Shown here: positions 3,255 through 52,096 of the stretch, one piece after another
Position numbering within the stretch: the first letter of the stretch is position 1
Layout: each line of letters opens with the position of its first letter
IMG/VR virus record: IMGVR_UViG_3300033182_000980
Span: 1 to 64,000 of that record
Length of the DNA stretch: 64,000 nt
Direction: 5' to 3' (one strand)
The notes under the pieces: generated by a model
Databases searched by the model: none
What the model was told of the DNA's origin: nothing
What the model saw: only the letters and a program-made list of their open reading frames with translations
Program-made: the position numbers and the translations under genes

Positions 3255-6200
3255 TCATTTCTTACCAAAGCGAGAATTGATTGAGTCTCTAAGGTTATAG
3301 CGTGGAGATTTAGGTGCAATCCTTTTAGCATCTGACCCACCTCGACCTGTATATCGACCACCTGTGGCAAAGGTTTTACCTCCTGCCATTGGGTGTCGGT
3401 ATTGCCTACTGCCTTTAGAACCAGAAGCAAAGTATCGACCTTTGCCGATGTTATTAGAGGCAAGCCATGTCATGCGTACAAGTGCGTCTGACATATCGTC
3501 ATGCTTACCTTTAGTCTGTGGAGCTTCGACTGTGATGAGGTGTTTACCATGCACCGTTTGCTGTAGCTCTAGGAGTTCTTGGATATAAGGCTCATGCCCT
3601 TCTGTCTCATAATTGGGGCGATTATATAGCTTGATTTTTTGATCCCACATCATGTCCTTAAAGTTTTGGTACATCTGTGAGGATAGCTGTTTAGTCATAT
3701 TGTGAGAGGTAAGATTTTTTAGACCTCGCTTCTCAAGTGCTTGTTGAAAGGGTATGCCAGCCCATTGGTCAAACATACCCTCTGTGATGTAGAACTTCTT
3801 TGTGTATTCTAGTACCCAATCAGCGACATCATCGAACTCTAATCGCTCTTTGTCTTGGTAGATCCCTTCACCAGCTTTGATTTGAGCCACGAGGTCTACC
3901 ACGATTTCTTCACCTTCGAGGTGTCCAATAGCGATAGCTGTACCGTCACCTACAAGACCCAAGTCGATTCCCATAAAGTGTGGCTTACGAGCAGGTGCTG
4001 ATCTCTGAGGTTTTAATTGAGGGTCTACACAAGATAAGAGGTCTTGTTCATCTGTGATCCACCCTCTTGTTCTGTCTGTAAACTCGCCACCATACTCTGT
4101 AAAGAACACAGCGGCGTTCTTGAGATAATGCTTCTCGAACTCTTGAGCAGGGACAGTTGGGTTTACTTCCCAAGTAGGTGCTTGAACAGCGAGAATGTTA
4201 TCGGCAGCCGCTCCACCACCCATACCGATTTGGAACAGGTTATAGAACAAGCCCTGTTTACCCAAAGGAGAAGAAATCAAGATAACCCGACCCTCCACCT
4301 CCCCAATAGGAACTGTAGGGTTGTTAGGATCTTTAGCTGAATACGCAGAGGTCGAAGGAACAACAGCGTTATACACTTCTTCTGCACCCGATTGACCCGA
4401 CTCTGTAAAGTGAGCAACCTCGTCAAGAATAACGCATATATTACCAGCACCACGAAGGCCCTTAGCTACACAAGACCTAAATGTAACCTTGAGTGTAGCT
4501 TTAGCAGAGGGATCTTCAATGTATCGACCGTACTTCTCAACATCAGCGGGTGTTTGGAAGCGAGCATAGGATAGGGTGTTATTCGCTGTATATGGTCCAA
4601 AGAAGGCACAGTTGCTTGTAGCGATGTTCCCCTCTAACACAAAGGAATGTGATCCAGGTACTGTGGCACAATATACTTTCTCAAAGCGAGAGGTGGGTTG
4701 AACATCAATAACCGTCCAAGAGCTTGTGTCTCGCTTAACTTGAGCGTGTTTGAGGAAAGACTCTTTGTGCTTAGGGATGATGAAGAATGACTCATCGAGC
4801 GTATGCTTCATCAAGCACATCTTATACATGGTGTGCGGCTTACCTGTTAGGTTTGAGACTCTATGATCCTCTCGGATGCTATAACAACCAATCCCTAAGA
4901 GATAACAGACATCACGAAATGCCTTAATGTTTTCAACAAAGGCACTTGTCATCACAACCTGTCCATTAGAAACAGATCCATCCGCCGCAAAGTATCCAGC
5001 AAGCCACCCTAAGAGGTATGACTTACATTCACTTAGATCGGGTATCTCTTTAAAGTGGTTTGGAGTTCCTGTGAATGATACACCCCCTTTGATTTCTTTA
5101 CGCTTACACATAGAGAAATAAGGCATGAGGGAGGAGTCTTTATCTCCAAAGAGGCAAACACCATTTACAGATCGTGGGTTTTTAGAGTTAGTTCCGTCAC
5201 CAAAAGTGAAGCCATGAGCAACCCCAAAAGGGGAAGGAGTGATGAGGTTCTTGTAGCTTTGACCATAGGTGGCTTGTAGATGATGTTTATTTGGTCTTAG
5301 TTCGTGAGTTTCAAACTCTTGGTAGCCTTTCCCTCTGTATCGCTTTCTGGCATCTCTAGCGAACCATTTATGATCTTTAGTGGCGTATATGGTTTTGAGG
5401 ACACCTTGTCTTTTAAGGGTGATCTTATAGAGCTGTTGTTCGCCAAAACATCGGACAGGTGCTTTGACCCAAGCACCCTCTCTCGTAAGCAAAGTAGGCT
5501 CTTGACCCTCTAGTTCTCCAAGTGTTTTGACACCTAGTGATGTAATGACCTCTGTCTCTGGAGCGAAGCAGTTGCGATAGTGTCCAGACACCTCTTGATA
5601 AAGCAGACCAGCTTGGTCTTTATCAGTCGCCACAGAGATGATTTGGATGTTATTGCTTTGAGGTAGTCCGTAGAACTTTTGTGGGTTTTCTTTTTTGATG
5701 AGCTTATAGGTTTCATAAGCGGCGATACACGCAGAAATCGTAGTGTTATGATTAGTGAACCCATTGCCGATGAACATTGCACCATTAGGCACATTGAGAT
5801 CAAAGACATGAGCTTCACGCTGTTCTACTTTAATGATAGGGTCAAAAAAGTAATCCAGATCAATGAGGTTATATAGTTGAGACTTTGTGGTTTGACTTAG
5901 ACCCTCATGGTCAGCGATCTTCTTGATCTTCCAATAGGGTGTATATTTAGTTGTAGGGCTTAGGTCATGTTTGAGATCGGGGTGGAACTTCTTGAGTCGT
6001 TCAGCATATTCATAGAAGAAGGGAACACCCTCATTAGACCCTCTATAAGAAACGCTCGACATTACACCCTCAAGGCATTTTTTCTTACGCTCTGATATGA
6101 ACCCTATATGTTGGTCAAAAAGTCGCTTAGACTTTGATCCTTTGAGTCTTACACGATACTCGGTTCGATCTTCCCGATTACTTTTGGAAAGGTTAGATGT

Positions 6201-7340
6201 GATGCCGAGATTAAGTAGGAGGAGTTGTGTCTCTCTTGCAAGCTCATAAGAGGCAGTTGAGAGCGTAATGGACTGTGCGTAAGCCGAACCATCAGTTTCA
6301 AACAAACCTCTTAGAAAAGCACAGACTACGCTTTTAGGGGATTGCATGATTGTATGTGGGATTTGCTTGGTAGTTGTCGTGCAATCAACAACCCAACCTA
6401 GATTATTAAGGAACTGTCTTATGTCCTTCCCATGAGCCGAGACTCTGCCAACATCTACTTTCCTCTTATCTGGATAATAAGAGACTTTACCAAACAAGTC
6501 TCTGAACAGACCCATTAAGTATTTCTCAAATGGCTTCTCTCCCACAGTGATCGTGATCGCCTTGTCATTAGTCCAATGTCCGTCCCCTGCGAGTAGACCT
6601 AGTAGTTCACCCCAACGCTCATCAAGGTATTTAGGTTGACCCTCGCTTGTATGGTGCTGGCTTATATCAACATATTCATTGGGCCAGAGTTGACTTGAAC
6701 GATTGATGCAAGCCACATCACCTTCTTCGATCTCTTCAAGGTACTTCCATTCGATCTTACATTCTGGAGTCATCACTTTGATACGATGATTTCCTGTACC
6801 CTCAATCCTGTACCCACAGAATGTCTCTAGGTACTTGGTGGGCTTGACCCCTCCATTATAAAAGTAAGCTGATCTTGAGTTTGCACCCGACTCTTGTGCG
6901 ACATTAACTTGTAAGGGTTGTATCTCTTCACCATTAGGGTCGCCTAAAGAGTCAATACGAACCATGCCCTTATTAGTAGGGATAAGGGTTTCACCTGTGA
7001 CACATTTACCAGACCTACGACCAATGGAGAGGATCATCTCTCGTCTTTGCTTGCCTGGTATAACTTCACCTATATTGCAACGACCTTCTTCATAGATTTT
7101 TCGCAGGTAAGATTTCTCGGTGTGAGTCTCTATTTTGGTTCTTGTCCAGTCCGAGATTTGAAAGGTCTTTTCGTCATCAAGCTCAAGACCATAGTGTGCT
7201 TTGAGGATAACTCTTTGCACAGGGAATAGGGTCATCTTCAAACCCCAAGATGCTTCTACGAACTCAATGATGTCTGCATCTTTCTCTGACTTTTTACCAG
7301 CTCTCGCACTCGCAGAGATCGCTACCGAGGATAAACTCAT
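3255..7340 (-). CDS. terL: Terminase large subunit with two inteins (mature ~621 aa)
   Basis: Walker A GRRSGK|TT, Walker B VILDEVAHF, ILISSP motif, RNase H-like nuclease FMGIDLG...HDDMSDA. Confidence 0.92.
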   Translation of the reverse strand: MSLSSVAISASARAGKKSEKDADIIEFVEASWGLKMTLFPVQRVILKAHYGLELDDEKTFQISDWTRTKIETHTEKSYLRKIYEEGRCNIGEVIPGKQRREMILSIGRRSGKCVTGETLIPTNKGMVRIDSLGDPNGEEIQPLQVNVAQESGANSRSAYFYNGGVKPTKYLETFCGYRIEGTGNHRIKVMTPECKIEWKYLEEIEEGDVACINRSSQLWPNEYVDISQHHTSEGQPKYLDERWGELLGLLAGDGHWTNDKAITITVGEKPFEKYLMGLFRDLFGKVSYYPDKRKVDVGRVSAHGKDIRQFLNNLGWVVDCTTTTKQIPHTIMQSPKSVVCAFLRGLFETDGSAYAQSITLSTASYELARETQLLLLNLGITSNLSKSNREDRTEYRVRLKGSKSKRLFDQHIGFISERKKKCLEGVMSSVSYRGSNEGVPFFYEYAERLKKFHPDLKHDLSPTTKYTPYWKIKKIADHEGLSQTTKSQLYNLIDLDYFFDPIIKVEQREAHVFDLNVPNGAMFIGNGFTNHNTTISACIAAYETYKLIKKENPQKFYGLPQSNNIQIISVATDKDQAGLLYQEVSGHYRNCFAPETEVITSLGVKTLGELEGQEPTLLTREGAWVKAPVRCFGEQQLYKITLKRQGVLKTIYATKDHKWFARDARKRYRGKGYQEFETHELRPNKHHLQATYGQSYKNLITPSPFGVAHGFTFGDGTNSKNPRSVNGVCLFGDKDSSLMPYFSMCKRKEIKGGVSFTGTPNHFKEIPDLSECKSYLLGWLAGYFAADGSVSNGQVVMTSAFVENIKAFRDVCYLLGIGCYSIREDHRVSNLTGKPHTMYKMCLMKHTLDESFFIIPKHKESFLKHAQVKRDTSSWTVIDVQPTSRFEKVYCATVPGSHSFVLEGNIATSNCAFFGPYTANNTLSYARFQTPADVEKYGRYIEDPSAKATLKVTFRSCVAKGLRGAGNICVILDEVAHFTESGQSGAEEVYNAVVPSTSAYSAKDPNNPTVPIGEVEGRVILISSPLGKQGLFYNLFQIGMGGGAAADNILAVQAPTWEVNPTVPAQEFEKHYLKNAAVFFTEYGGEFTDRTRGWITDEQDLLSCVDPQLKPQRSAPARKPHFMGIDLGLVGDGTAIAIGHLEGEEIVVDLVAQIKAGEGIYQDKERLEFDDVADWVLEYTKKFYITEGMFDQWAGIPFQQALEKRGLKNLTSHNMTKQLSSQMYQNFKDMMWDQKIKLYNRPNYETEGHEPYIQELLELQQTVHGKHLITVEAPQTKGKHDDMSDALVRMTWLASNNIGKGRYFASGSKGSRQYRHPMAGGKTFATGGRYTGRGGSDAKRIAPKSPRYNLRDSINSRFGKK
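4611..5570 (-). mobile_element. Intein 2 (320 aa, LAGLIDADG) in terminase
   Basis: Starts CFAPETEVIT, block B ATKDHKW, ends GNIATSN|C; HGFTFGDG and LAGYFAADG blocks. Confidence 0.9.
5745..7004 (-). mobile_element. Intein 1 (420 aa, LAGLIDADG) in the terminase Walker A
   Basis: Starts CVTGETLI, ends GFTNHN|T; LLGLLAGDG and FLRGLFETDG blocks. Confidence 0.92.
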
Positions 7341-13592: not shown

Positions 13593-13652
13593 ATTCTTTA
13601 GATACCTTTCGCTTATAGAGTGAGGAGAATATACCCTCAGAATGGAGTCCAC

Positions 13653-14942
13653 ATGACAAAGGCAGTTTTGTTAGATACGAGTGTTCTAATACACGACCCT
13701 ACCTCTATGACCTCTTTTGGAGATGATACCGAAGTCCTCATTCCAATCTATGTTATTATGGAGCTTGATGTCCTCAAAGACACACCAAAGCGTGAGAAAT
13801 CCCATGTCGCTCACCTTGCCCGACAAGCCTCAAACCTCATCCTTGAGCTACAGCCACAAGGTAAGGTCAAAGTAGTCTCTCACGATGGTGAGATCAGCAT
13901 CCGATCTTTAGATCGTGCTAATCAGATTAGGTATGTAGACCTACTCATTCTACAAACTGCTATCCACCTTAAAGATGATTATGATTTAACTCTAGTATCA
14001 AGAGACATCAACCTTCGTATCATCTGTGAGTCCGTAGGGGTTAAATCAGACGACTACACATCAGACACAAGCACAGATACTCTTAATGGCATCGGACTCA
14101 AAGAGTTCGTACCCGATGTTGTCTTAATGAACCAGCTCGTTAAATCATATTGGCAAGGGGCTGTTAGACTCCCACACGAGTTTGATACCCCTTTCCATGA
14201 AAACCAATACGGATGGTTTATAGCACCAGGTGAAAAGACACATCTATTCGTACACAGAGATAACTCACTTTTCCCTGTAGATAAGGTGCGTACCGAGAAA
14301 GCTAAACCTAGAAATCTTGAGCAACGAGCCGCACTTGACGCTCTATTAGATCAAGACATTGAGCTAGTCTGTCTCTTAGGTAAAGCAGGCACAGGTAAGA
14401 CCTTTCTTGCATTAGCTGCCGCTCTGGAGCAGGCTCACACATATCAGCGTATATTGCTCTCGAAGCCTGTCGTTGATGTGGGTAATGGTATCGGCTTCTT
14501 GCCTGGTTCTTTATCCGAGAAACTTGAGCCTTGGATGCAGAGCTTCTTTGATAACCTCGATCAGATCAACCCTCTTTGGGACGCTGGTCCAATGGGTGGG
14601 GAGATGGGTAGCAAAGAGGGCTTCCTTGAGAAGAACCAGATTGAGATCCAACCTATCCACTCTATTAGAGGTCGCTCACTTAAGAGTGCGTTTATGATTA
14701 TTGATGAGGCACAGAACCTCACCAAGCATGAGATCAAATCAATCATCACAAGAGCGGCAGAGGGGACGAAGGTTGTCCTCTTAGGCGATCCTTATCAGAT
14801 AGACCACCCTTACCTCACCAAGCAATCTAATGGTCTTGTGTATGTGATTGAGCGTATGCTGGATCAGCCTTTATTTGCGTGTGTGAGTCTACATAAGTCA
14901 GAAAGGTCAAGTCTCTCTGATATAGCGGCTGACTTGCTTTAA
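13653..14942 (+). CDS. phoH: PIN-domain PhoH-like ATPase
   Basis: PIN LLDTSVL; GKAGTGKT, GFLPG, RGRSL, IIDEAQN, GDPYQID. Confidence 0.92.
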   Translation: MTKAVLLDTSVLIHDPTSMTSFGDDTEVLIPIYVIMELDVLKDTPKREKSHVAHLARQASNLILELQPQGKVKVVSHDGEISIRSLDRANQIRYVDLLILQTAIHLKDDYDLTLVSRDINLRIICESVGVKSDDYTSDTSTDTLNGIGLKEFVPDVVLMNQLVKSYWQGAVRLPHEFDTPFHENQYGWFIAPGEKTHLFVHRDNSLFPVDKVRTEKAKPRNLEQRAALDALLDQDIELVCLLGKAGTGKTFLALAAALEQAHTYQRILLSKPVVDVGNGIGFLPGSLSEKLEPWMQSFFDNLDQINPLWDAGPMGGEMGSKEGFLEKNQIEIQPIHSIRGRSLKSAFMIIDEAQNLTKHEIKSIITRAAEGTKVVLLGDPYQIDHPYLTKQSNGLVYVIERMLDQPLFACVSLHKSERSSLSDIAADLL

Positions 14943-19087: not shown

Positions 19088-19282
19088 TTACACTTCCCAC
19101 CAATCGTACATTGTAAAGCCGAACTCTTCGCTGATCCAGTCCGAGATGCCATCTTCATCCTCATAGGCTATGTCTATAGGTACGAGAACAATATGTGGTA
19201 GTCCAGCTTGTTCCACAGCGTCATCATAGTCGAGCGTTTCAAGCTCAGTTTGAGAGAAGTCCCACTGAACACGAACTTTCAT
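19088..19282 (-). CDS. Small acidic hypothetical protein
   Basis: 64 aa directly downstream of the GS gene. Confidence 0.6.
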   Translation of the reverse strand: MKVRVQWDFSQTELETLDYDDAVEQAGLPHIVLVPIDIAYEDEDGISDWISEEFGFTMYDWWEV

Positions 19283-19285
19283 GTT

Positions 19286-20305
19286 TTACTCCCAAGAGTC
19301 CGAGATGGTTCTAATCAATGCTTCACACACAAGATAAGGGTCAGCATTAGCGTTGGGTCTACGATCTTCAAAGTAGCCACAACCATTCTTAGCTGTCTCA
19401 ACAGGAATACGAACCGAAGCTGTACGGTCAGACACTCCCGACTTAAACTCATCATAACGACAAGTCTCGTGATGTCCTGTTAATCGGATCTCATATCCAG
19501 AACCATAGCGATCAAGGTGCTCTTGAATCCTATGTGACATCTTCTCAACAGCCTTGTTGATTTCTTCAAGACCACCATCTTGCCTCATTGCTTTGGTGGA
19601 GAAGTTGGTGTGCATACCCGCACCATTCCAATCACCGGTGACTGGCTTAGGATCAAGGGTGGCCGAGATGTCGAAATCTTCACCTACACGATATAGAAGC
19701 CACCGAGCAATCCATAGATAGTCGCTTGCAGACAGAGCATCTTGCATAGGACCGCCAAGTTGAAACTCCCATTGACCAGGCATTACCTCTGCGTTGATGC
19801 CTGTGATTGGTAGCTCTGCTTTCAAACAAACATCAAGATGCTTCTCGACTAGATTTCTACCCGACACTTCATCAGCCCCAACGCCACAATAATAAGGTCC
19901 TTGTTCAGCAGGAAACCTACGCTCACTAGGGAAGCCAAGAGGTCTTGATCCCTTATAGAGCGTATACTCTTGCTCAAAGGCAACCCACTCACCTTGATCG
20001 TCAAATGACTTGAGTGCTTCTACGAGCTTGGCTCTTGTATTTGAGGGGTGTTTTTCTCCATCAACAGTCTCGACTTCACATAGAACGAGAATGTTATCTC
20101 CACCTCTAATGGGGTCATCAACAACTCTTACAGGTCGTAGCACACAGTCAGAGGAGCTACCTTCTGCTTGCATGGTAGAAGATCCGTCAAAGCTCCAAAG
20201 GGGTAGTTGTTCTGGTGAAAAAGCAGGAGCTGAAAGGTACTTGGTCTTAGACCTTACTCTTGCTGTTGGGTTTCCACCATCAATCCAAATATATTCTGCG
20301 AGCAT
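19286..20305 (-). CDS. glnII: Glutamine synthetase type II
   Basis: AEYIWIDG, WSFDGSST, QGPYYC, NAEVMPGQWEFQ, DWNGAGMHTNFST, GYFEDRRP; 339 aa. Confidence 0.95.
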   Translation of the reverse strand: MLAEYIWIDGGNPTARVRSKTKYLSAPAFSPEQLPLWSFDGSSTMQAEGSSSDCVLRPVRVVDDPIRGGDNILVLCEVETVDGEKHPSNTRAKLVEALKSFDDQGEWVAFEQEYTLYKGSRPLGFPSERRFPAEQGPYYCGVGADEVSGRNLVEKHLDVCLKAELPITGINAEVMPGQWEFQLGGPMQDALSASDYLWIARWLLYRVGEDFDISATLDPKPVTGDWNGAGMHTNFSTKAMRQDGGLEEINKAVEKMSHRIQEHLDRYGSGYEIRLTGHHETCRYDEFKSGVSDRTASVRIPVETAKNGCGYFEDRRPNANADPYLVCEALIRTISDSWE

Positions 20306-20353: not shown

Positions 20354-21058
20354 TCAATCAAACAAGTCGAAGATAGAAATCTGCTCCCCCTTTTGAGGTT
20401 TCGCCTTACCCACTTGAGCTTCTGACTCAATCTCTGTGCCGAGTGGCATCCAATGGCGAATACGAGCCTCGCAAATCTTTGCGTACTCTGGATTAAGCTC
20501 TACCCCCACAAAGTCATGTCTAAGCCGACTCATGGCTATACCTGTAGTTCCCGAACCTAAAAATGGGTCTACAACCTTTGAGTTAGGAGATATATCCCTT
20601 GCACACCATTCCATGATGTCGATTGGTTTAACTGTGGGGTGGATGTTAGCTCGCCCAGCTCCCTCAGCCGACAGACCAGCTTCTCTTTCAGACCGACTCG
20701 CTTTTGATGTGTAGTAAAAGCTATCTGATTTATCTGCTACAAAGATTGCATCTCGAACTTCAAAACCTGTGTCCTCAAGAGCAATAACACCCTTATAACC
20801 AATGTCTTCTGGAATCATTACCACATGAGCACCTGGCTTAAGGATGTCCATGATCTCTTTAGCCTGTTCATCTGTCGGTTCACCTAGTAAGATTAAGCCA
20901 TGCACCATCGGTTCATAAGAAGGGATTAACGCACCCTCCTCATATACCTCTTTCTTGTATGCAGAGAAATCAAGATCATCGAGGGTTGAAACTACGACAC
21001 AAGCGTCATCCACAGGTGGGGTAATCATCGTCTTAAAGTATTCAATCATTTCATCCAT
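20354..21058 (-). CDS. DNA N4/N6-methyltransferase, SAM-binding (C-terminal) subunit
   Basis: FYYTSKASRSERE, HPTVKP, VVDPFLGSGTTG, GVEL; no DPPY motif. Confidence 0.85.
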   Translation of the reverse strand: MDEMIEYFKTMITPPVDDACVVVSTLDDLDFSAYKKEVYEEGALIPSYEPMVHGLILLGEPTDEQAKEIMDILKPGAHVVMIPEDIGYKGVIALEDTGFEVRDAIFVADKSDSFYYTSKASRSEREAGLSAEGAGRANIHPTVKPIDIMEWCARDISPNSKVVDPFLGSGTTGIAMSRLRHDFVGVELNPEYAKICEARIRHWMPLGTEIESEAQVGKAKPQKGEQISIFDLFD

Positions 21059-21133
21059 TTAAAAATCCCATAACTTTGGTTTTGGTTTAGGTTCTTCTCA
21101 CATTCAGAGTCATGTGAGTGTTCAAAGTGTAGC

Positions 21134-21187
21134 TTATATAGATTGTACCTCTGCATATCTGCAATCACCTATTTTGATCTCAATCAT
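21134..21187 (-). pseudogene. 17-codon remnant of a second methyltransferase catalytic gene
   Basis: MIEIKIGDCRYAEVQSI*; first 9 aa identical to the 23555 ORF; same ATGA coupling. Confidence 0.65.
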
Positions 21188-21792
21188 TGGTTATTCTCTT
21201 TCTTAAATTGTTTAAAGAACCTAGAAGCACCACCTTCATCGTTATATCCTTCTTTATATCCTTGTCTTTGAGTAGAAGAACTATGGAAAGAGTTTCCTTG
21301 ATATGGGTTAAAAGTATTATGGTTTTGACTCGACCAACCTTTGACTCGACCACTTTGTTGGTCTAACTCTTTAACAGGACAATCTTCTACACAAGCCCAA
21401 TCTGCCACTGTCTCTTTTCCATCTTCATCTGCATACCCTGCTTTCCCCTTCATATTTACAGGGCTAAAGCTACCTCCTCCCCCATATACATAATTGCTTT
21501 TAGTCTTATTGTCCTGATGAGCAGTACCCGATTTAATCTTCTTTGTACCTTTTAACTCACAACCATCTTTATGAGTGAGGATAAAGTTAGCTGGAAACCT
21601 ACCAATCTCTTGCTCACTTGAGTCTCCATAAATGCCTTTTGTTTTAGAAGCCTCTGACTTGCGACTATGGTTTTTTGTTTTGTCGTGAGAAGAAACTCTA
21701 GTCTCATCTATATTGATAGCTCCGCACCCATGTTTAAGAGTGTTCTCGGCTACAGAACCTTCAAGGGGTTTTCTCAATAGGGTGATAATCAT
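21184..21792 (-). CDS. Methyltransferase variable-region cassette C
   Basis: MIITLLRKPLEGSVAENTLKHGCGAINID...GRFPANF...GGASRFFKQF. Confidence 0.8.
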   Translation of the reverse strand: MIITLLRKPLEGSVAENTLKHGCGAINIDETRVSSHDKTKNHSRKSEASKTKGIYGDSSEQEIGRFPANFILTHKDGCELKGTKKIKSGTAHQDNKTKSNYVYGGGGSFSPVNMKGKAGYADEDGKETVADWACVEDCPVKELDQQSGRVKGWSSQNHNTFNPYQGNSFHSSSTQRQGYKEGYNDEGGASRFFKQFKKENNQ

Positions 21793-23555
21793 TTCTTAAC
21801 CCCAATACATATACTTTCCCATGCTGGTTTAAGAGCAGTACCCCAGCCATCCCAAGTCTTAGCTTCATCCGACACTAAGGCACGAACAGGGATCATAGCG
21901 TTCTTTTGGACAATGCCCACACCCCCTCGTGCAATCCCTCCATGACCTTGTGAGTCCTCAACACTCACACCTGGCTTATGTCCGATGATTTCTCCCTCGA
22001 CCCCTAGTTTCTTTTCAAACTGCTTGGCTAGGTTGTGTGATTTTGGGAATCCGCTATTACCCGTCACAAAAACCTTCCCGTTCCTTCTTGCGACAAAAGC
22101 CCCATAAGGTACTCGCACACACCACATCACACCCTCATAAAACTGAGGTGTTATGGTTGCCAAAGTGGTGCTGGTAGACCATGTGCTTCGTAGAGTTTGT
22201 GATCTCGATTGTTCTTGAACAGCATTAAATTCTCGATCCGATTGTCTGTCGCATCGTGATTGATGTGATGGACACACTCTGTCCGAGTAAGTGGTCTGCT
22301 CAAACGCATAGCAACCTTCAATCTGTGTTCCGCCACATAACCATCTTTCCTCGCCATCTCTTGATACTCCGAGGGGCAACGAACATACTTGATCTTTTGC
22401 TTTGTGTAGTTGCCTTTCCGATTGCGATATGTCACACCACCCTTCCATGCTGGATTGTTTGCCCCCCTCATTGACTCCGAGTATTTCTTTTCTGTCTCCT
22501 CGCTCCAAGCCGACCTCCCCTTGTGTGCATGAGATTTCCACTCTTGACCCCTCACCACCCCGTTGCACTTTTGAGAGCAATAACTGACTTGAACCCTCAA
22601 GGCGTGGCTCGCTGATCTTTTGAAGGTCTTGTTGCAAATAGGGCAAGTCAGAGTTACCTTTTTCTTCTGACACTCTTTCTTGCAATACACCCTTGATCGC
22701 CCCACTTTCCCGTCCGAGACTTGAAACTCCCCCTCGCAACCCCGACACACTTTGGTGATTTTCGGTAGACGCACACACTCGCGACTGCACCGCTCCTGCG
22801 TGGGGCTTTTTGTCTGAAAATCTTGGTCGCAACTCTTGCATACTTTCGTCAGTAGTGGCTTCGCTCTGTGTTTTTGTCTTGGCATACAGATCGACTTTCT
22901 CCTGCCATGAACAGTCGTATCTGTTAGAAAAAGTTTGTTGCAATCCTTGAACTGACATATCTTCCACAAAGGGTATGACTTCTTTTGCTTGCAGGTGTTC
23001 TGCGAGATGAAAAGCTCTTTCTCCCTCTCGTTCAACAATGCAACGGTGGTTTTTAGACACGAGCTGGTCTGTATCATCCGAGTATATTCTGTATGCGGTA
23101 TCCTTGTATTCATATCTCAACATCTCCTGTACTTCTTGGAGATCAAATCGATCTCCCTCTAAGGAGTATGCCACAACCATAGAACCAACATCAAGCTCTT
23201 GATGTTTTGACCACCCTTTATCAGTAAGGATTTCAGTATCCTCACAAAGACACCCATAACTCCAGGCTTCAATCTTGAGATCAGAGAACCCTATTTCCTC
23301 CATCATTGCTATTAAGTGATGAAAGGTTCTTGTACCAGAGAACGCTTTGAGAACCCCATTCGGTTTAAGGACTCTATGAGCTTCAGTTAGCCATCCTCGA
23401 TGCCACTCCCTTTGTTGTGACCCATCTCCGATGTCATCCCAACCTTTAGACATAAACTTGAGTCCATAAGGGGGATCACAGATAATAGCATCAACGGAGT
23501 TATCCTCTAGGTCTTTGAGTCTTTGGGTGCAGTCACCTATCTTGATTTCTATCAT
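21789..23555 (-). CDS. DNA N4/N6-methyltransferase catalytic (N-terminal) subunit with intein
   Basis: IGDC, DPPYG, RVLKPNG, WSYG|SGFPKS, GWGTALKPAWE; 189 aa after splicing. Confidence 0.88.
   Translation of the reverse strand: MIEIKIGDCTQRLKDLEDNSVDAIICDPPYGLKFMSKGWDDIGDGSQQREWHRGWLTEAHRVLKPNGVLKAFSGTRTFHHLIAMMEEIGFSDLKIEAWSYGCLCEDTEILTDKGWSKHQELDVGSMVVAYSLEGDRFDLQEVQEMLRYEYKDTAYRIYSDDTDQLVSKNHRCIVEREGERAFHLAEHLQAKEVIPFVEDMSVQGLQQTFSNRYDCSWQEKVDLYAKTKTQSEATTDESMQELRPRFSDKKPHAGAVQSRVCASTENHQSVSGLRGGVSSLGRESGAIKGVLQERVSEEKGNSDLPYLQQDLQKISEPRLEGSSQLLLSKVQRGGEGSRVEISCTQGEVGLERGDRKEILGVNEGGKQSSMEGWCDISQSERQLHKAKDQVCSLPLGVSRDGEERWLCGGTQIEGCYAFEQTTYSDRVCPSHQSRCDRQSDREFNAVQEQSRSQTLRSTWSTSTTLATITPQFYEGVMWCVRVPYGAFVARRNGKVFVTGNSGFPKSHNLAKQFEKKLGVEGEIIGHKPGVSVEDSQGHGGIARGGVGIVQKNAMIPVRALVSDEAKTWDGWGTALKPAWESICIGVKK
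22056..23252 (-). mobile_element. Intein (399 aa) in the methyltransferase
   Basis: CLCEDTEILT start, block B VSKNHR, ends VMWCVRVP.GAFVARRNGKVFVTGN|S. Confidence 0.88.
22151..23113 (-). CDS. Zn-finger/HNH homing endonuclease nested in the +1 frame of the intein (start uncertain)
   Basis: Repeated CxxC...CxxxC units, NNPAWKGG, YVAEHRL...VHHINHDATDNRIENL. Confidence 0.85.
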   Translation of the reverse strand: MNTRIPHTEYTRMIQTSSCLKTTVALLNEREKELFISQNTCKQKKSYPLWKICQFKDCNKLFLTDTTVHGRRKSICMPRQKHRAKPLLTKVCKSCDQDFQTKSPTQERCSRECVRLPKITKVCRGCEGEFQVSDGKVGRSRVYCKKECQKKKVTLTCPICNKTFKRSASHALRVQVSYCSQKCNGVVRGQEWKSHAHKGRSAWSEETEKKYSESMRGANNPAWKGGVTYRNRKGNYTKQKIKYVRCPSEYQEMARKDGYVAEHRLKVAMRLSRPLTRTECVHHINHDATDNRIENLMLFKNNRDHKLYEAHGLPAPLWQP

Positions 23556-24205
23556 TGGTCATTCCCTGTCTTAAATTGTTTAAAGAACCGAGAAGCACCA
23601 CCTGTATCTCCGAAGCCTGGTTCTCCTTTTTCATGTCCTGTACCCCACCCTGTTCTGCCTTGATTAGAATAGACACCTTGAGCGTTCCCAATACGACCTC
23701 CTGTCGATTTACTTACCCCACTTTGTTGATCTAACTCAACAACAGGGCAACCCTCCACACAAGCCCAATCCATCACCTCCTCTTTCCCATCTTTATCTGC
23801 ATGACCCATCCACGCTTCATTGTCTTTGACAGTTTTCACATCTGTAAGGCTACGATCCTTTTGGTGTTCTTCTTGGTATTTCTTAGACCAAATACCACCT
23901 GGACCATTCGGATAACCTTTATGTCCTTTAACTTTCTTAGTCCCTTTTAATTCACAACCTTCTTTATGGATAAGGATAAAGTTAGCTGGCCATCTCCCTG
24001 TAGTGATCTTGCCCTCGAAGTCCTCTTTAAGACCCGATTGAAAGACTGTACTTTTATGTTTATCGGGAGAACGACCATTTTTAGATGTGTCTTGAATGAT
24101 GTTTCCAATGCGAATTTCATCAATGTTAATCGCACCACAACCATATTTAAGGGTATTGTCAGCAACAGAACCCTCGGTGGGCTTTCTTAATAATGTTATA
24201 ATCAT
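23552..24205 (-). CDS. Methyltransferase variable-region cassette B
   Basis: MIITLLRKPTEGSVADNTLKYGCGAINID...GRWPANF...GGASRFFKQF. Confidence 0.8.
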   Translation of the reverse strand: MIITLLRKPTEGSVADNTLKYGCGAINIDEIRIGNIIQDTSKNGRSPDKHKSTVFQSGLKEDFEGKITTGRWPANFILIHKEGCELKGTKKVKGHKGYPNGPGGIWSKKYQEEHQKDRSLTDVKTVKDNEAWMGHADKDGKEEVMDWACVEGCPVVELDQQSGVSKSTGGRIGNAQGVYSNQGRTGWGTGHEKGEPGFGDTGGASRFFKQFKTGNDQ

Positions 24206-24519
24206 TGGTCATCCTTTGTATCAAATTGTTTGAAGAAATTTGACCCATCACACTTTATATTATTTGTTAAGATGAAGTTAGCTGGCCACCTACCTTTTTC
24301 TTTATACATCTGTATGTCAGATCCAACTTGAGCTACATGACCCGACCAACCTTTTTCTCTAGGGTCTGCTTTCTGTATTTGTCTCGCTTCAAAGTTGATG
24401 CTTTCGTCATCACCAAAAGAAACTCTTAAAGCATCAATATTGATAGCCCCACAACCATGTTTAAGGGTGTTCTCAGCCACACTTCCCTCTAGGGGTTTTC
24501 TCAGTAATGTAATGATCAT
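24202..24519 (-). CDS. Methyltransferase variable-region cassette A (short)
   Basis: MIITLLRKPLEGSVAENTLKHGCGAINID...GRWPANF...FFKQF. Confidence 0.75.
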   Translation of the reverse strand: MIITLLRKPLEGSVAENTLKHGCGAINIDALRVSFGDDESINFEARQIQKADPREKGWSGHVAQVGSDIQMYKEKGRWPANFILTNNIKCDGSNFFKQFDTKDDQ

Positions 24520-25895
24520 CTCTTGCTCCGAATCACATGACCCACAGAACCAATCGTGGTAGCTATGGATATGGATTTGTCTAACAACTCAATCATCCTA
24601 CCGACAGGGAATGGTTCGTATAACTCTTTTATGCCCCAAACGCTTGAGTCATTCTCGGCAGTACCAAGATTATGGCAGACCACTTTGAATGGTGCTTTCA
24701 ACGCTCTGTCCAGATACTCATTGCCTGTCTCGATGTTGTAGAGCGTAGGGATAGCACCTTTGACATAGCCATTCACCTTTGCGTCCATCATAGAAATCAA
24801 CGCTTTCTCGGCAAGTACCCTTCTCCACCTTGCTTCGGCTTCGGTTGCCCCACCTACTCGTAAACGAACTAGAGTGCCATTGAGGGCATTAGCTCTTTTG
24901 CGTAGTAGGTCTTGTGTATGAGGGTGAGGACAAGTCTCTGCTTCTCTAAGAAGTTCATCTACTCGGTCTGCTGTCTTATCTACATGGTCATCATAAGGGT
25001 CTACAATCATCTCACCATAGTTGAGGACTGTGTTAATCGCAGAACCGTAGAACTCTGGTACAAACTTTTCGTATTTCTGATCGACCACAGTTGCCCCTGT
25101 AAACGAAGCAAAGTCATCTAGCCACCCTTTACCCCAAATCACTCTAGGGGCATCACAAGCGTACACTTCAAGCGTTCCCTTATGATTGTTCATTTTGATT
25201 GCTTGTAGGGCTTTACCCCCAACCATTGGAGCGATAATAACTAATGGCCTACCTTCAAACGATCCCATATACTCCATAGCGTTGAGTATATGATCTACTT
25301 CAAATACTGGACGACTAAACAGAGCGAACATTGGACCTTTGAGGTATGCTTCTTTGTCATGGTGTACTTTTAAAGAAGCGTGGAAGGACTCGGTTTCGAC
25401 TACCTCACACCCATTGCCTTCCCATTTTTCAAGAGAGACATGAGAAGATAAAGATCCAGCGAGATAGATTGCTTCGGAGATTTTATCAATGGACTCCTCA
25501 TCAAGCTCACTTTGCAGTCCGATTTCTTTTAGGATGTCTTGGTTAGACTCAAATCGAGGCACAGCATCTACGGCTATATTTACAGCTCGCTTCACCTGCT
25601 CTGTAATAAGAGGGTGTACCTCACCATAATGTCGGTGAAAGGATCTCAAGAGAGATATGGCTATGAACGCACCCCACTTACAACCGTCACCAGATTTACA
25701 GAGTTCTAATAAGGAGGTCTGTATAATTCTAGCGTAGGGTTCTGGTCGGTACGCATTGATGATGGACTTAGCCGAGAGGTTATTCCAAATCTTGTTGTTG
25801 CGAGAGAGTAGGACTGTTCCTCCATTACTCGCATGGCTCAAAACTAAAAGTGATGATAGTTCATTTATTGTAGGTATAAATAAAGATAACGACAT
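24516..25895 (-). CDS. Divergent GroEL-like chaperonin
   Basis: GDG motif, RPLVIIA, AP..G...LDD.A..TGA, L.KR...L.G....RVGGATEAE. Confidence 0.75.
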   Translation of the reverse strand: MSLSLFIPTINELSSLLVLSHASNGGTVLLSRNNKIWNNLSAKSIINAYRPEPYARIIQTSLLELCKSGDGCKWGAFIAISLLRSFHRHYGEVHPLITEQVKRAVNIAVDAVPRFESNQDILKEIGLQSELDEESIDKISEAIYLAGSLSSHVSLEKWEGNGCEVVETESFHASLKVHHDKEAYLKGPMFALFSRPVFEVDHILNAMEYMGSFEGRPLVIIAPMVGGKALQAIKMNNHKGTLEVYACDAPRVIWGKGWLDDFASFTGATVVDQKYEKFVPEFYGSAINTVLNYGEMIVDPYDDHVDKTADRVDELLREAETCPHPHTQDLLRKRANALNGTLVRLRVGGATEAEARWRRVLAEKALISMMDAKVNGYVKGAIPTLYNIETGNEYLDRALKAPFKVVCHNLGTAENDSSVWGIKELYEPFPVGRMIELLDKSISIATTIGSVGHVIRSKR

Positions 25896-43389: not shown

Positions 43390-44583
43390 TTAAATAGATA
43401 CCATTCCTTTTACCATCTTGCTAAACTCCGAGAGCGAAAGTTGTTTCTTTGGCGGTGGTTTATCTACCTGTGGTTCTGGAAGAGGGGTTTTTTCTTCAAA
43501 CTTTATTTGAGGCACTTGTAGGGTTTGTACCCCTCCGATCTTCCATTTCAACAAATCACACTTGAACATACCACCTGTCGGCCTAATCGGGCGACTCGCT
43601 AAATTATCTGCAAGACTAAGCAAAGGCATACCGTACTTATCCCAGATCTCTTGCAGTAGAGGTCTGTTCCAATATGGAGGTGGCACACCTGCCTTCATAC
43701 CAAGAGAAATCGCAAACATACACGCTGATTGCAACCTGTCATAAGCAATACCGACAGGAGTCGATTGTAATAACTCATCGACCAAGCTCAAAGACTTAGC
43801 ATTATCACTCAACAAGAGCTGACAGATTACATCATTACGATCTACATGGAGGTATGCCCTTACCCCCTGTAGACCCACTTTACCCTCATTCGATGAAGCT
43901 ACACCCTCAATGGCTTTTAAAGCATCTCGGATATGACCCTCTGTAAAGTCAGCAATCAAGACCAACGCTTCTCGCTCATATTCAAAGCCCTCCCACTCAC
44001 ACACCTTTTGCAAACGGTCAGCGATTTCTTCCGAGTCTACATGGCGAATGATGAACGCAGGAGCACATCGACTCAATACAGTCTGTCTCATCTTCTCTGG
44101 TTCGGTAGTGGCAAAGATACAGACGAGCTTCTTATCAAAGCTACCCCGATCATTCTCCTCCATCGGTTTTAATAACGCATCCAGTGCGTCTTTAGAGAGC
44201 TGATGGGCTTCATCGAAGAGATAGAGTTTCTTCTTCCCCGAAAATGAAGCATACCCTAGCTCTTCTAAGAGCTTCTTTACATCTGCTTTACCACTGTTGG
44301 TCGCCGCGTCCACCTCAATGAATGAGTCATGGCTACCCATTAACATAGCCTTGCAAGAATGACATTCATCACAAGGCTCTCCGTCAACAGGAGACTCACA
44401 CAATAAAGCACGAGCCATGATCCGACCAAGTGTGGTCTTGCCCGAACCATAAGGACCAGCGAACAGATAAGACTGCCTCCAACCTGCGTCAGACTTGATA
44501 AAGCCTTTGAGCGTTTGGATTGTAGCCTTTTGACCAAGTACATCGCTGTATGTTCTCGGTCTGTATTTGGTGTCTAAAGACAT
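43390..44583 (-). CDS. dnaX: DNA polymerase III gamma/tau-like clamp-loader subunit
   Basis: KYRP..DVLGQ, YLFAGPYGSGKTT.R, PC.EC.SC, EVDAA, DEAHQL, ATTE, SRC, G.IRDA. Confidence 0.92.
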   Translation of the reverse strand: MSLDTKYRPRTYSDVLGQKATIQTLKGFIKSDAGWRQSYLFAGPYGSGKTTLGRIMARALLCESPVDGEPCDECHSCKAMLMGSHDSFIEVDAATNSGKADVKKLLEELGYASFSGKKKLYLFDEAHQLSKDALDALLKPMEENDRGSFDKKLVCIFATTEPEKMRQTVLSRCAPAFIIRHVDSEEIADRLQKVCEWEGFEYEREALVLIADFTEGHIRDALKAIEGVASSNEGKVGLQGVRAYLHVDRNDVICQLLLSDNAKSLSLVDELLQSTPVGIAYDRLQSACMFAISLGMKAGVPPPYWNRPLLQEIWDKYGMPLLSLADNLASRPIRPTGGMFKCDLLKWKIGGVQTLQVPQIKFEEKTPLPEPQVDKPPPKKQLSLSEFSKMVKGMVSI

Positions 44584-44681
44584 CTTCTCTCCTCTCGTAT
44601 AGGGTACACATACCCTTATACTATTTCGGAAGTAAATGGACTCGGTATCATTCATATAAAGGGAATGGGAGAAAAGACACC

Positions 44682-50554: not shown

Positions 50555-52096
50555 TTAGCCGAAGAACTTGCTGACATCTGGAGCAGACTCCCAGAGCTTA
50601 GAAAGCTCATCAGAAGCACTTGAAGCCTCACGAGAGATGTTGCCGAGAGTCTTAACAGCCGCTTTACGAGCAGAGGTGCGTGGGCGATAAGAAGCCTTCT
50701 TCTCGGCCTTTTCCTCTTTAGCCTCTTCTTCGGTAGACTCTTCTTCGGTAGACTCTTCTTCGGTAGACTCTTCCTCGGTAGCTTCTTCCTCGGTAGCTTC
50801 TTCCTCTTTAGCCTCTTCCTCTGCGTCCTCATCGGCGGCAGTGAAGATAGAAGCGAGGCGTGGGTCCATAGCCATAGATTCGTCAGCGTCCATGTCAAGA
50901 CCCATGACATCTTCGCCCATCATGTGAGCTTCAGTCTCGTCAGCAGTATAACCATACTGTGCATCATTCTGCTCACGAGTGTCATCAGCCTCAAGCTCTG
51001 CAAGGAGTGAAGCCATCTCGTCATTAGCAGTGGTGTCCATCTCTGCCATGTAGCTTGAAAGAGCTTCTGCAAGACGCTCAATCTTTGCAAGACGCTGAGT
51101 AGGCTGACCCTCTGAAGGCTCGTTAGCTGGAGTGGTGTCGATCTCAAGATCAGGATCTTCACCTTGGTAGTCAGTACCAACTTGAACAGCATTGTCAGCG
51201 AGCTTACGAACCTTGCGAGCAAGACGAGCGTTAGCGGCTTTAAGGGTAGCGATTTCTTCTGCGAGAGCCTCGGCAGATGAAGAGTGATCCTCGGCCATCA
51301 TGTGTGCGTGGCTTTCATCAGCCTCAAGTTCAGCCATGATCTCTGCAAGTTCATCATCAGCCTCAAGATCGTCTGCGAAAGACTCACCAAGACCAAGAGC
51401 GATCTCATCACGAGAAAGGAAACCATCCTCATCCTCGTCAAGATCGTCAAAGATCTCGTCAGAACCACCCCACTCGTCCATAGAGATCATGCCATCACCA
51501 TCGAGGTCATAAGCATCAAACATGGTGTGCCCCATAAGATCGTCAGCCTCAAGCTCATCGCTTGCATTGCCTGGACCTGTGAACTCAAGACCCTCATCAT
51601 ACTCTGTACCAACCTGTACTGCGTTGTCAGCAAGACGAGCAACACGGGCATTAACAGTGCGGTTAGGGAGATCCATCATGCGAAGGGCAAGATCTTCGAT
51701 CTCACGCTGTGAAGCACGGCGACCAAGACGGCTTTCAGCGATACGAATGCACTTAGCGGCTTTACGCTCCATAGCTTTCTTAAGGTTCTCTTGGCGAAGA
51801 TCATCAGTAAGAGCGTAATCCTCTACAAGCTCGTCAGTAACTGCTGGATGCTCTGGCTCCCAACCATAAGATGCTGGTGCTGGACCTGAACGATAAGGCC
51901 CTTTGCGAACGCCCTCACCGAACTCCGAGTCGAAGCCATACTGATCGACAGAAGGTTGATCAGAAGAAGCAGGGTGTCCGAAGTGATCCCAACCAAGGTT
52001 ATCATAACCAGGTAGGCCTGAGTTTGCACGACGGCTTCTTCTACGAGCAAGCTCTGCCCTGCGAGACATATTCTTAGAACGAGAATACCTAGACAT
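50555..52096 (-). CDS. Capsid scaffolding protein with EF-hand pair
   Basis: Very acidic coiled coil between protease and capsid genes; DLDGDGMISMDE and DEDEDGFLSRDE loops. Confidence 0.65.
   Translation of the reverse strand: MSRYSRSKNMSRRAELARRRSRRANSGLPGYDNLGWDHFGHPASSDQPSVDQYGFDSEFGEGVRKGPYRSGPAPASYGWEPEHPAVTDELVEDYALTDDLRQENLKKAMERKAAKCIRIAESRLGRRASQREIEDLALRMMDLPNRTVNARVARLADNAVQVGTEYDEGLEFTGPGNASDELEADDLMGHTMFDAYDLDGDGMISMDEWGGSDEIFDDLDEDEDGFLSRDEIALGLGESFADDLEADDELAEIMAELEADESHAHMMAEDHSSSAEALAEEIATLKAANARLARKVRKLADNAVQVGTDYQGEDPDLEIDTTPANEPSEGQPTQRLAKIERLAEALSSYMAEMDTTANDEMASLLAELEADDTREQNDAQYGYTADETEAHMMGEDVMGLDMDADESMAMDPRLASIFTAADEDAEEEAKEEEATEEEATEEESTEEESTEEESTEEEAKEEKAEKKASYRPRTSARKAAVKTLGNISREASSASDELSKLWESAPDVSKFFG
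50722..50805 (-). repeat. 15-bp tandem repeat encoding EE(A/S)TE
   Basis: ttcttcggtagactc / ttcctcggtagcttc units. Confidence 0.8.

Follow-up and report, generated by a model that had tools for sequence, protein, structure and literature searches.

The region of interest occupies positions 20,354 to 24,519 on the minus strand of the window, the whole 64,000-nt stretch of DNA that was analyzed here, which derives from a giant phage. Five ORFs in this region map onto consecutive thirds of single-chain class-beta N6/N4 DNA methyltransferases: N carries the DPPY half, C carries motif X and the FxGxG half, and T1, T2 and T3 are paralogs of the middle part, which sits where the target-recognition domain (TRD) lies in this class (Table 1). 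The gene order is T-T-N-T-C, and no further copies of N, T or C occur in the window. Five ATGA overlaps chain the genes, at the junctions between a chaperonin-like gene and T1, T1 and T2, T2 and N, N and T3, and T3 and a remnant of a second N gene. In addition, no terminator-like site lies on the coding strand inside the cluster.

Table 1. Features of the split methyltransferase locus (minus strand; coordinates are those of the window)
Feature	Coordinates	Length	Description	Supporting data
T1	24202..24519	105 aa	Short stand-alone middle module; only variable segment V1, lacks the H/C/C/C block and V2/V3	106-aa ortholog in the relative L004 (7751-8068), dN/dS 0.10; phrog_3008 positions 3-82, E 1.6e-9
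T2	23552..24205	217 aa	Full-length stand-alone middle module; V1 type 0, V3 type 0	35% identical to residues 204-400 of the intact homolog L001; 958 stand-alone relatives found; pI 8.6
N	21789..23555	588 aa	Catalytic half (motifs IV-VIII, DPPY), made as a precursor; exteins aa 1-101 (23555-23253) and aa 501-588 (22055-21792)	Pfam N6_N4_Mtase positions 1-82, E 1.6e-12; exteins 92% and 88% identical to the uninterrupted 189-aa N2 of L004, dN/dS 0.03-0.085
Probable intein in N	22056..23252	399 aa	Inserted in the conserved YG|SGFPKS site; starts CLCEDTEIL, SKNH at the block B position, ends VFVTGN followed by Ser	Boundaries from the empty-site allele in L004; same insertion at the same site in P0053
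HNH endonuclease ORF	22151..23113	244 aa from the probable start	Inside the intein, shifted by one base relative to the intein frame; probable start ATG at 22885; Cys-rich fingers plus an HNH motif	Pfam HNH_3; PHROG HNH families; homologs cover residues 14-244 of the 244-aa version
T3	21184..21792	202 aa	Full-length stand-alone middle module; V1 type 5, V3 type 3	dN/dS 0.21-0.32 against relatives; pI 8.9
N remnant	21134..21187	17 codons, then stop	Start of a second N gene (MIEIKIGDC...) in ATGA overlap with T3; homology to the N start extends down to 21160	Direct repeat D4, 21160-21240 against 23528-23608, 88% identity
C	20354..21058	234 aa	AdoMet-binding half (aa ~113-234: KAS..ERE, HPTVKP, DPFLGSGTT) preceded by a pseudo-N half (aa 1-112) with invariant HG.ILL.EPT in place of DPPY and no last strand	Pfam N6_N4_Mtase positions 151-219, E 5.7e-15; PDB class-beta methyltransferases match aa 132-210; pseudo-N half aligns to the N half of intact enzymes (E 8e-5 and 1e-4); dN/dS 0.064

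The layout of the locus had first been described in a sequence-only reading, which recognized the DPPY gene, the HPTVKP/DPFLGSG gene, the three stand-alone middle paralogs, their ATGA overlaps and a junction strand present on both sides of the N/T boundary. That observation is confirmed. The Pfam N6_N4_Mtase profile (PF01555; 221 positions) is matched by N and C in complementary parts, and N and C likewise hit the N-terminal and C-terminal halves, respectively, of the same Type II methyltransferase models of NCBIfam and PADLOC, whereas the T proteins gave no hit in Pfam, NCBIfam or PADLOC. When compared with L001, an intact homolog of 515 aa, N aligns to residues 21-200, T2 to residues 204-400 and C to residues 399-514, so that the three parts tile the intact protein end to end. 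The class-beta order of motif IV, TRD and motif I holds only when N, T and C are laid on an intact homolog in this way, and the seven-stranded fold, which one polypeptide forms in members of this class, is here divided over at least two genes. The three T proteins share the blocks MIITLLRKP.EGSVA.NTLK.GCGAINID, GR(W/F)PANFIL and FFKQF, with different sequence in between. Both junctions are doubled: N ends with ICIGVKK and T starts with MIITLLRKP, while the intact protein has this strand once, and T ends with GGASRFFKQF and C has SFYYTSKAS, while the intact protein has GGASRFFYCAKAS once.

Three features had escaped the sequence-only reading, and its description of the two core genes was incomplete. 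The gene it called catalytic is two-thirds probable intein plus an overlapping HNH gene, the gene it called SAM-binding also holds a conserved, eroded copy of the N half, in which EPT does not satisfy the (D/N/S)PP(Y/F/W) consensus of motif IV, and the first 27 nt of a second N gene follow T3. The insertion in N (residues 102-500) is in frame and absent from the allele in L004, and it has the residues expected for splicing, i.e., Cys1, the block B SKNH, a terminal Asn and Ser at +1, although the penultimate residue is Gly rather than His. The Pfam Intein_splicing profile matched it only weakly, below its cut-off (E 0.044, 14 bits against a cut-off of 35.8), and a PDB sequence search gave no hit. 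The intein frame contains no stop codons, where about 31 are expected (minimum 17 in 5000 synonymous resamplings).

The three-way split recurs in at least 12 distinct, related jumbo-phage contigs from different metagenomes, with 1-4 T genes, 1-2 N genes and C always last, which shows that it is not a frameshift or an assembly artifact. Whether relatives vary in cassette number and whether the cassettes evolve neutrally had been proposed beforehand as tests of the sequence-only reading; the number of T genes does vary, and the cassettes do not evolve neutrally (dN/dS 0.10-0.37, with dS about 0.9-1.6), all parts being under purifying selection (dN/dS 0.03-0.37). Across 181 stand-alone T proteins, four blocks are conserved and three segments (V1-V3) are hypervariable, and among 148 T proteins, 52 V1 types and 36 V3 types occur in many combinations. 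The variable segments V1 and V3 occur in discrete types that are re-assorted between phages, which fits recombination through the conserved blocks. About 20 natural T-pseudoN-C fusion proteins exist, with N encoded immediately upstream in the one fusion locus examined (P0268), and such two-gene versions, together with the fusions, show that the parts belong to one system. Single chains with 2-4 tandem T domains also exist. Stand-alone T proteins form a large family of 958 clusters, nearly all unnamed or called hypothetical and none with a Pfam domain, and we found no paper on them.

The interpretation given in the sequence-only reading, a multi-subunit methyltransferase whose specificity module can be swapped in trans or shuffled via conserved blocks to widen protection against host restriction, is partly supported. 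There is no sign of programmed DNA shuffling: all cassettes lie in direct orientation without flanking inverted repeats, the only inverted repeat being one 16-nt pair inside T1, and no recombinase gene showed among the ORFs at the locus, albeit without a dedicated search for one. The shuffling is evolutionary.

Based on these data, the explanation that we favor, with some reservation, is that the locus encodes a heteromeric class-beta amino-methyltransferase, probably N6-adenine given DPPY, built from separately translated and translationally coupled parts. In this view, N, once its probable intein has spliced out, would supply the catalytic half of the fold (motifs IV-VIII), and C would supply the AdoMet-binding half (motifs X, I-III) plus a catalytically dead copy of the N half that would act as a scaffold, while each T protein would be a free-standing target-recognition module. 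All T proteins have the same two adapter ends and an internal conserved frame with an invariant H/C/C/C set (T1 lacking this block), which may bind zinc. The N-terminal adapter is the strand MIITLLRKP, which duplicates the last strand of N and is missing from the pseudo-N half of C, and the C-terminal adapter, GGASRFFKQF, duplicates a segment at the start of the AdoMet half. The hypervariable segments V1-V3 lie between these adapters. Because the adapter ends are the same, T1, T2 and T3 could each dock on the one N/C core, which would give several holoenzymes of different sequence specificity, so that the phage genome would be methylated at several motifs and escape several host restriction systems. 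New specificities would arise over evolutionary time by gain and loss of T genes and by recombination in the conserved blocks.

What the analysis demonstrates is the homology of each part to its segment of intact enzymes, the conservation of the split, purifying selection, the mosaic nature of T genes and the existence of natural T-C fusions; the physical complex, the strand that docks at each place, catalysis and DNA methylation, protein splicing, and the role of the T proteins in setting specificity are all inferred. The recognition role is supported by the location of T exactly where class-beta enzymes carry their TRD (PMC7544214) and by the observation that T2 and T3 are the only basic parts (pI 8.6-8.9, against 4.6 for C). 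However, the T domain matches no solved structure, so that this role rests on position, charge and variability, and short T proteins such as T1 lack most of the domain and may act differently. The AF2 model of a natural fusion is confident (pLDDT 83, pTM 0.78), with the N-terminal strand of T modeled at pLDDT 96, whereas the model of C alone was poor (pLDDT 58). It should be noted that the pseudo-N half of C raises a topological problem: if it packs on its own AdoMet half in the usual way, the real N half has no place to insert. Foldseek alignments, which were judged without inspection of the coordinates, suggest that the two halves are not in the canonical arrangement in the model, since the RMSD is 18-21 Å when both halves are aligned and 0.9-1.4 Å for the AdoMet half alone.

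Other explanations are less likely. It is possible, though doubtful, that only one T, or only the full-length ones, assembles with N and C, and that the other T genes, above all the short T1, are regulators, competitive inhibitors or relaxed-specificity variants rather than alternative specificity subunits. The truncation of T1 would fit this view, as does the visible gene turnover, i.e., the N remnant after T3 and a chimeric T with an N tail in the relative L003. However, short T proteins are conserved as such in several phages, the T1 pair with L004 has the lowest dN/dS of all T pairs, all T proteins keep both adapter ends, and the T domains that single-chain relatives carry in tandem are complete. 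It is unlikely that the parts have been re-used for another anti-defense role, such as AdoMet binding or depletion or DNA binding, without N and C forming one active site. The eroded motif IV of C, which could be a closed, inactive, AdoMet-binding fold on its own, and the failure to recover the canonical arrangement in the model could be taken in this sense, but DPPY in N and FxGxG/HPTVKP in C are kept under strong purifying selection, N is always encoded with T and C, and intact single-chain relatives are ordinary methylases.

We consider it very unlikely that the parts are joined during translation into one or several long chains by programmed frameshifting at the ATGA overlaps or by stop-codon recoding. 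All junction stops in the window are TGA within ATGA, and fused T-N-T-C and T-T-T-C chains exist elsewhere. However, junction geometry differs between relatives (overlaps of 4, 1 or 13 nt, a 3-nt gap, and gaps of 125-454 nt), module order is not fixed, and no slippery heptamer lies at the junctions. Moreover, reading through TGA in frame meets another stop within a few codons and stays out of frame with T, and in the T frame a TAA lies two codons before the ATG of T3. An assembly error, or decay of a methylase gene broken up by homing-endonuclease activity, might be suspected because the sequence is a metagenome assembly and a probable intein/HNH element and an N remnant lie in the locus, but this possibility is in practice refuted by the occurrence of the same split in independent assemblies from many samples, by purifying selection on every part with near-saturated synonymous change, and by the duplicated junction segments, which a frameshift does not produce.

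A more far-reaching reading, which remains tentative, is that of a plug-in specificity system that evolved independently of Type I enzymes, in which a single catalytic core, N plus the AdoMet half of C, is re-targeted by a recombining family of free-standing TRD proteins. Each T would dock by strand complementation onto the dead half-fold of C, and the heterotrimer would then reproduce, with one and a half folds, the arrangement of class-beta dimers in which one protomer reads and the other methylates. If so, the stand-alone T family is a large natural library of exchangeable DNA-recognition modules for one methyltransferase scaffold. Phage methyltransferases are a main route of escape from restriction, yet the known multispecific ones are single chains of the C5 class. 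A class-beta enzyme taken apart into a catalytic half, a cofactor half and several exchangeable recognition proteins would be a new way of building specificity. It would explain a large family of unnamed proteins in marine and other jumbo-phage metagenomes, it would give a direct test of the division-of-labor idea for class-beta enzymes, because the recognition and catalytic parts are already separate genes, and it would offer a natural scaffold for retargeting adenine methylation by swapping a protein of 100-220 aa.

Several known systems resemble parts of this locus. In Type I restriction-modification methyltransferases (M2S1, e.g., M.EcoKI), a separate specificity subunit acts in trans on a common catalytic subunit and has variable recognition regions between conserved regions, new specificities arise by re-assortment, and hsdM and hsdS overlap and are translationally coupled (PMC3510504). 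HsdM is a complete class-gamma fold and HsdS is an unrelated protein, whereas here the putative recognition subunit is the excised internal TRD of a class-beta enzyme, the catalytic fold itself is cut in two, several T genes sit side by side, and no restriction subunit is present; as T gave no hit to Methylase_S, the resemblance to HsdS is an analogy and not membership. The multispecific cytosine-C5 methyltransferases of the Bacillus phages SPR, phi3T, rho11 and H2 carry several target-recognizing modules that serve one catalytic core, each giving its own specificity, as protection from several host restriction systems (references 86-87 of PMC7544214). These are C5 enzymes with all TRDs in one chain, whereas the enzyme inferred here is a class-beta amino-methyltransferase with TRDs as separate genes, although single-chain multi-T relatives of the present family (P0001-P0004) do exist.

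Class-beta dimers with division of labor and heterodimers with an eroded motif IV partner (M.EcoP15I Mod2, CcrM, METTL3-METTL14, MTA1-MTA9) belong to the same class; one protomer recognizes and the other methylates, and in the heterodimers the partner has a degenerate motif IV, EPPL in METTL14 (PMC7544214), the position at which C carries a conserved EPT. In those cases both partners are complete folds in one chain each, whereas here the presumed dead copy is only a half-fold fused to the AdoMet half, and the putative live catalytic half is a separate protein. The naturally split C5 methyltransferases M.AquI and M.EcoHK31I also need two polypeptides for one methyltransferase, and M.AquI is cut within the variable region (PMC3404938), but these are C5 enzymes in two parts, with one specificity and no alternative recognition subunits. 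Finally, the probable intein with its overlapping HNH gene adds a clear case to the very few out-of-frame homing endonucleases described. In the ShiLan domain of actinophage methylases and the cyanobacterial dnaX intein, an HNH gene is likewise hidden in another frame of an insertion that stays open in the frame of the host gene, and for the ShiLan domain the host gene is a phage methylase of the same broad family (PMC11855218; bioRxiv 10.64898/2026.09.14.751524); HNH relatives of the ORF in the window lie inside methylase genes of mycobacteriophages Mantra and Totinger. The ShiLan domain has no splicing motifs, whereas the insertion described here has intein end residues and an empty-site allele, as in the dnaX case, but sits in a phage methylase subunit.

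The window forms part of the 375,691-bp viral contig IMGVR_UViG_3300033182_000980, and a search of the phage collection returned no near-identical DNA. On its minus strand, between a divergent chaperonin-like gene (phrog_5725, groEL) and a glutamine-synthetase-like gene (Pfam Gln-synt_N and Gln-synt_C), it carries, in this order, T1, T2, N, T3 and C, in which N and C correspond to the two outer parts of a DNA methyltransferase and the T genes to its middle part. Each gene start overlaps the previous stop in ATGA, and there are five such overlaps, counting the chaperonin/T1 junction and the one after T3. Pfam places N on positions 1-82 and C on positions 151-219 of the 221-position N6_N4_Mtase model and finds nothing in the T proteins, and NCBIfam and PADLOC models of Type II and orphan methylases are likewise hit by N in their first half and by C in their last third, whereas T hits none of them. 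An intact single-chain relative of 515 aa in an uncultured 485-kb phage (locus L001) is tiled by the parts: N aligns to residues 21-200 (39% identity), T2 to residues 204-400 (35% identity) and C to residues 399-514. It should be noted that this intact homologue has DPPA instead of DPPY at motif IV, and that its activity is therefore uncertain. The observation made in the sequence-only reading, that a methyltransferase is split into catalytic and SAM-binding genes plus three stand-alone middle cassettes, therefore holds, including the doubled junction strand. The coordinates of the features discussed here are listed in the table.

Coordinates of features in the window and in related loci
Location	Coordinates (strand)	Feature
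Window	22056-23252 (-)	Probable intein in the N gene
Window	22151-23113 (-)	HNH endonuclease ORF in a different reading frame within the probable intein
Window	24516-25895 (-)	Chaperonin-like gene
Window	19286-20305 (-)	Glutamine-synthetase-like gene
Window	19088-19282 (-)	Small, very acidic protein (64 aa)
L004	10369-10566	Small, very acidic protein
L018	4852-5154	Small, very acidic protein
Window	3255-7340 (-)	1361-aa ORF with a second intein
Window	13620-14942 (+), 61715-63145 (+), 50555-52096 (-), 43390-44655 (-)	PIN-PhoH fusion, type IB topoisomerase/integrase-like protein, EF-hand protein and clamp-loader-like ATPase
L003	2143-2655	Chimeric T gene
L001 (LR745208.1)	3392-4936	Intact single-chain homologue

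Three features of the locus had not been seen in the sequence-only reading. N is 588 aa long only because residues 102-500 are an insertion in the conserved YG|SGFPKS site; a close relative (locus L004) has the uninterrupted 189-aa gene, which is 92% and 88% identical in the two flanks. The insertion starts CLCEDTEIL, has SKNH where block B lies, and ends VFVTGN followed by Ser. We therefore read it as a probable intein, although the match to the Pfam splicing model is weak (E 0.044). The same insertion sits at the same site in an unrelated long methylase (P0053). Inside the insertion, shifted by one base, lies a 320-codon ORF with Cys-rich fingers and an HNH motif, which homologues cover from about its Met77 onward. 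When synonymous codons of this HNH protein were resampled 5000 times, the intein frame carried about 31 stops, and never fewer than 17, whereas the real sequence has none. Both frames are therefore maintained. Such out-of-frame homing endonucleases, of which few are on record, were described recently for the ShiLan domain of actinophage methylases and for the dnaX intein, and relatives of this HNH lie inside methylase genes of mycobacteriophages Mantra and Totinger. A second intein, this one with an in-frame LAGLIDADG domain, is present in the 1361-aa ORF (Pfam Intein_splicing E 3.7e-15, LAGLIDADG_3 E 6e-26). The other two features concern C and T3. The first ~110 residues of C align to the N half of intact enzymes (E 8e-5 and 1e-4), but where DPPY should be they carry an invariant HG.ILL.EPT across 12 relatives, and this pseudo-N half has no counterpart of the last strand of N. 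T3 is followed by the first nine codons of another N gene, which form part of an 81-nt repeat of the T2/N junction at 88% identity.

Searches of viral contigs with T2 and with C returned 26 loci carrying a full or near-full-length relative (of 88 loci returned in all), which represent about 18 distinct contigs from different metagenomes. Every locus long enough to judge has separate N, T and C genes. The arrangements seen are N-T-C (L012), T-N-C (L005), N-N-T-C (L014 and L015), N-T-N-C (L017), T-N-T-C (L016 and L022), T..T-N-T-C (L021) and N-T-T-N-T-T-C (L004/L011, syntenic with the window); C is always last, T numbers 1-4 and N numbers 1-2. Nei-Gojobori estimates against relatives, with dS about 0.9-1.7 where it could be estimated (one C pair was saturated), gave dN/dS values of 0.03-0.085 for the N exteins, 0.064 for C and 0.10-0.37 for T, compared with 0.03-0.055 for the flanking chaperonin-like and glutamine-synthetase-like genes. 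The conserved blocks of the three T genes differ mostly at synonymous sites. Frameshift artefact, decay and recent gene conversion are therefore excluded.

The flanking genes are syntenic in L004, L005 and L007 (related loci), and a small, very acidic protein (...DYDDAVEQAGLPH...EDEDGISDW...) is conserved next to the methylase array; in L018, another related locus, it sits between N and T. This protein matches no family in NCBIfam or PADLOC, and a DNA-mimic or anti-restriction role is merely a guess. Besides the other context genes listed in the table, the window has ORFs of 2234, 1171 and 870 aa without a Pfam match.

A profile of nine T proteins, searched against 1.84 billion representative proteins, found 14,035 proteins at E <= 1e-3. 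Among the best 150, about 60 are stand-alone proteins of 200-230 aa that begin at the same strand, whereas others are ordinary N-T-C chains, chains with 2-4 tandem T domains (P0002, P0004), T-T-T-pseudoN-C chains (P0001) or T-pseudoN-C fusions (P0071, P0095). The single chains P0001, P0002 and P0003, of 899-1164 aa, have three or four tandem T domains or T sub-repeats (T-T-T-pseudoN-C, and N-T-T'x3-C) and are possible single-chain multispecific amino-methyltransferases. A search restricted to 119-380 aa found 958 clusters at E <= 1e-5; in the 120 listed, nearly all are unnamed or called hypothetical and none has a Pfam domain, and several lie on contigs of 290-376 kb. About 20 full T-pseudoN-C fusions exist, one of which lies directly downstream of a 190-aa N gene, so two-gene versions of the same system occur. 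PHROGs has a family of short T-C proteins (phrog_3008) and one of stand-alone N proteins (phrog_6025). No relatives of T were confirmed in the representative bacterial and archaeal genomes, in which only two strict peptide patterns were scanned, and searches of T against solved structures, both as a single sequence and as a profile, gave nothing.

Across 181 stand-alone T proteins, the conserved blocks are residues 1-32, 70-93, 139-163 and 200-212 of T2, and the variable segments are V1 (33-69), V2 (94-138) and V3 (164-199). His80, Cys84, Cys149 and Cys153 are invariant in full-length T proteins; a zinc site is our inference. Clustering V1 and V3 separately in 148 proteins gave 52 and 36 types, respectively, in many combinations; for example, V1 type 0 occurs with seven V3 types. 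T2 and T3 of the window each share V1 with one relative and V3 with another. A footprint of recombination between modules is also seen in the related locus L003, in which a chimeric T gene lacks V1 and ends with the last 25 residues of an N module (...TWDGWGTALKPAWEPVCIGVKK).

In class-beta methyltransferases, the TRD points away from the pocket of its own chain, so they act as dimers in which one protomer reads and the other methylates, and some heterodimers keep a partner with an eroded motif IV (PMC7544214). T sits at the TRD position, is the only basic part, and is the only hypervariable and copy-number-variable part. We therefore take T as the putative recognition subunit, N as the catalytic half and C as the cofactor half. 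The duplicated junction segments look like adapters: N keeps its own last strand and can fold alone, T starts with a copy of that strand, which the pseudo-N half of C lacks, and T ends with a copy of the segment that opens the AdoMet half. The natural T-C fusions tie T to C, and in the AF2 model of one T-pseudoN-C fusion (pLDDT 83, pTM 0.78) the first strand of T is modelled at pLDDT 96, whereas an AF2 model of C alone, built with 12 sequences, was too poor to use (pLDDT 58). Since DPPY in N is strongly conserved and the only AdoMet site is in C, N must meet the motif I strand of C, which requires that the pseudo-N half does not occupy that place. Foldseek is compatible with this view: solved class-beta enzymes superpose on the fusion model at 0.9-1.4 A over the AdoMet half alone, but at 18-21 A when both halves are aligned, and the viral library gives the same picture. 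However, these are only global figures, obtained without inspection of the coordinates, and either the arrangement is non-canonical or the alignment is misleading; this step is therefore a hypothesis. With identical adapters, T1, T2 and T3 would give alternative holoenzymes and several methylated motifs. The coupling through ATGA overlaps and the absence of terminator-like sites on the coding strand fit co-expression. Promoter and terminator scans were at background level. The correspondence of the parts to an intact enzyme, the conservation of the split, the selection acting on each part and the re-assortment of the T segments rest on the sequences themselves, whereas methylation, assembly into a complex and the role of T in specificity are inferred.

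The interpretation in the sequence-only reading, a multi-subunit methyltransferase whose specificity module can be swapped in trans or shuffled via conserved blocks, is partly supported. There is no evidence for programmed DNA rearrangement: all cassettes are direct and the only inverted repeat is a 16-nt pair inside T1, so that a shufflon was rejected and the re-assortment is evolutionary. Joining of the parts by frameshifting or TGA recoding was also considered and rejected on junction geometry; fusion by frameshifting is unlikely because junction geometry and module order vary between relatives, and a stop lies two codons upstream of the T3 start in its own frame. Two apparent parallels did not hold: prophiGD51-1 genes 17 and 18 looked like a two-piece split but are two full methylases, and the long match of C to Alteromonas phage methylases was an over-extended alignment onto a normal single chain.

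Full-text literature searches gave no description of such a split, three-part layout, and T has no Pfam, NCBIfam, PADLOC or PDB match. The logic of the proposed system resembles that of Type I enzymes, which have a trans-acting specificity subunit with re-assorting variable regions, and also that of the multispecific C5 methylases of Bacillus phages, which have several TRDs on one core. The dead half-fold recalls METTL14 and MTA9, and naturally split methylases are known for the C5 class (M.AquI, M.EcoHK31I). None of these combines a class-beta fold cut in two, a pseudo-half as putative scaffold, and several free-standing genes for inferred TRDs.
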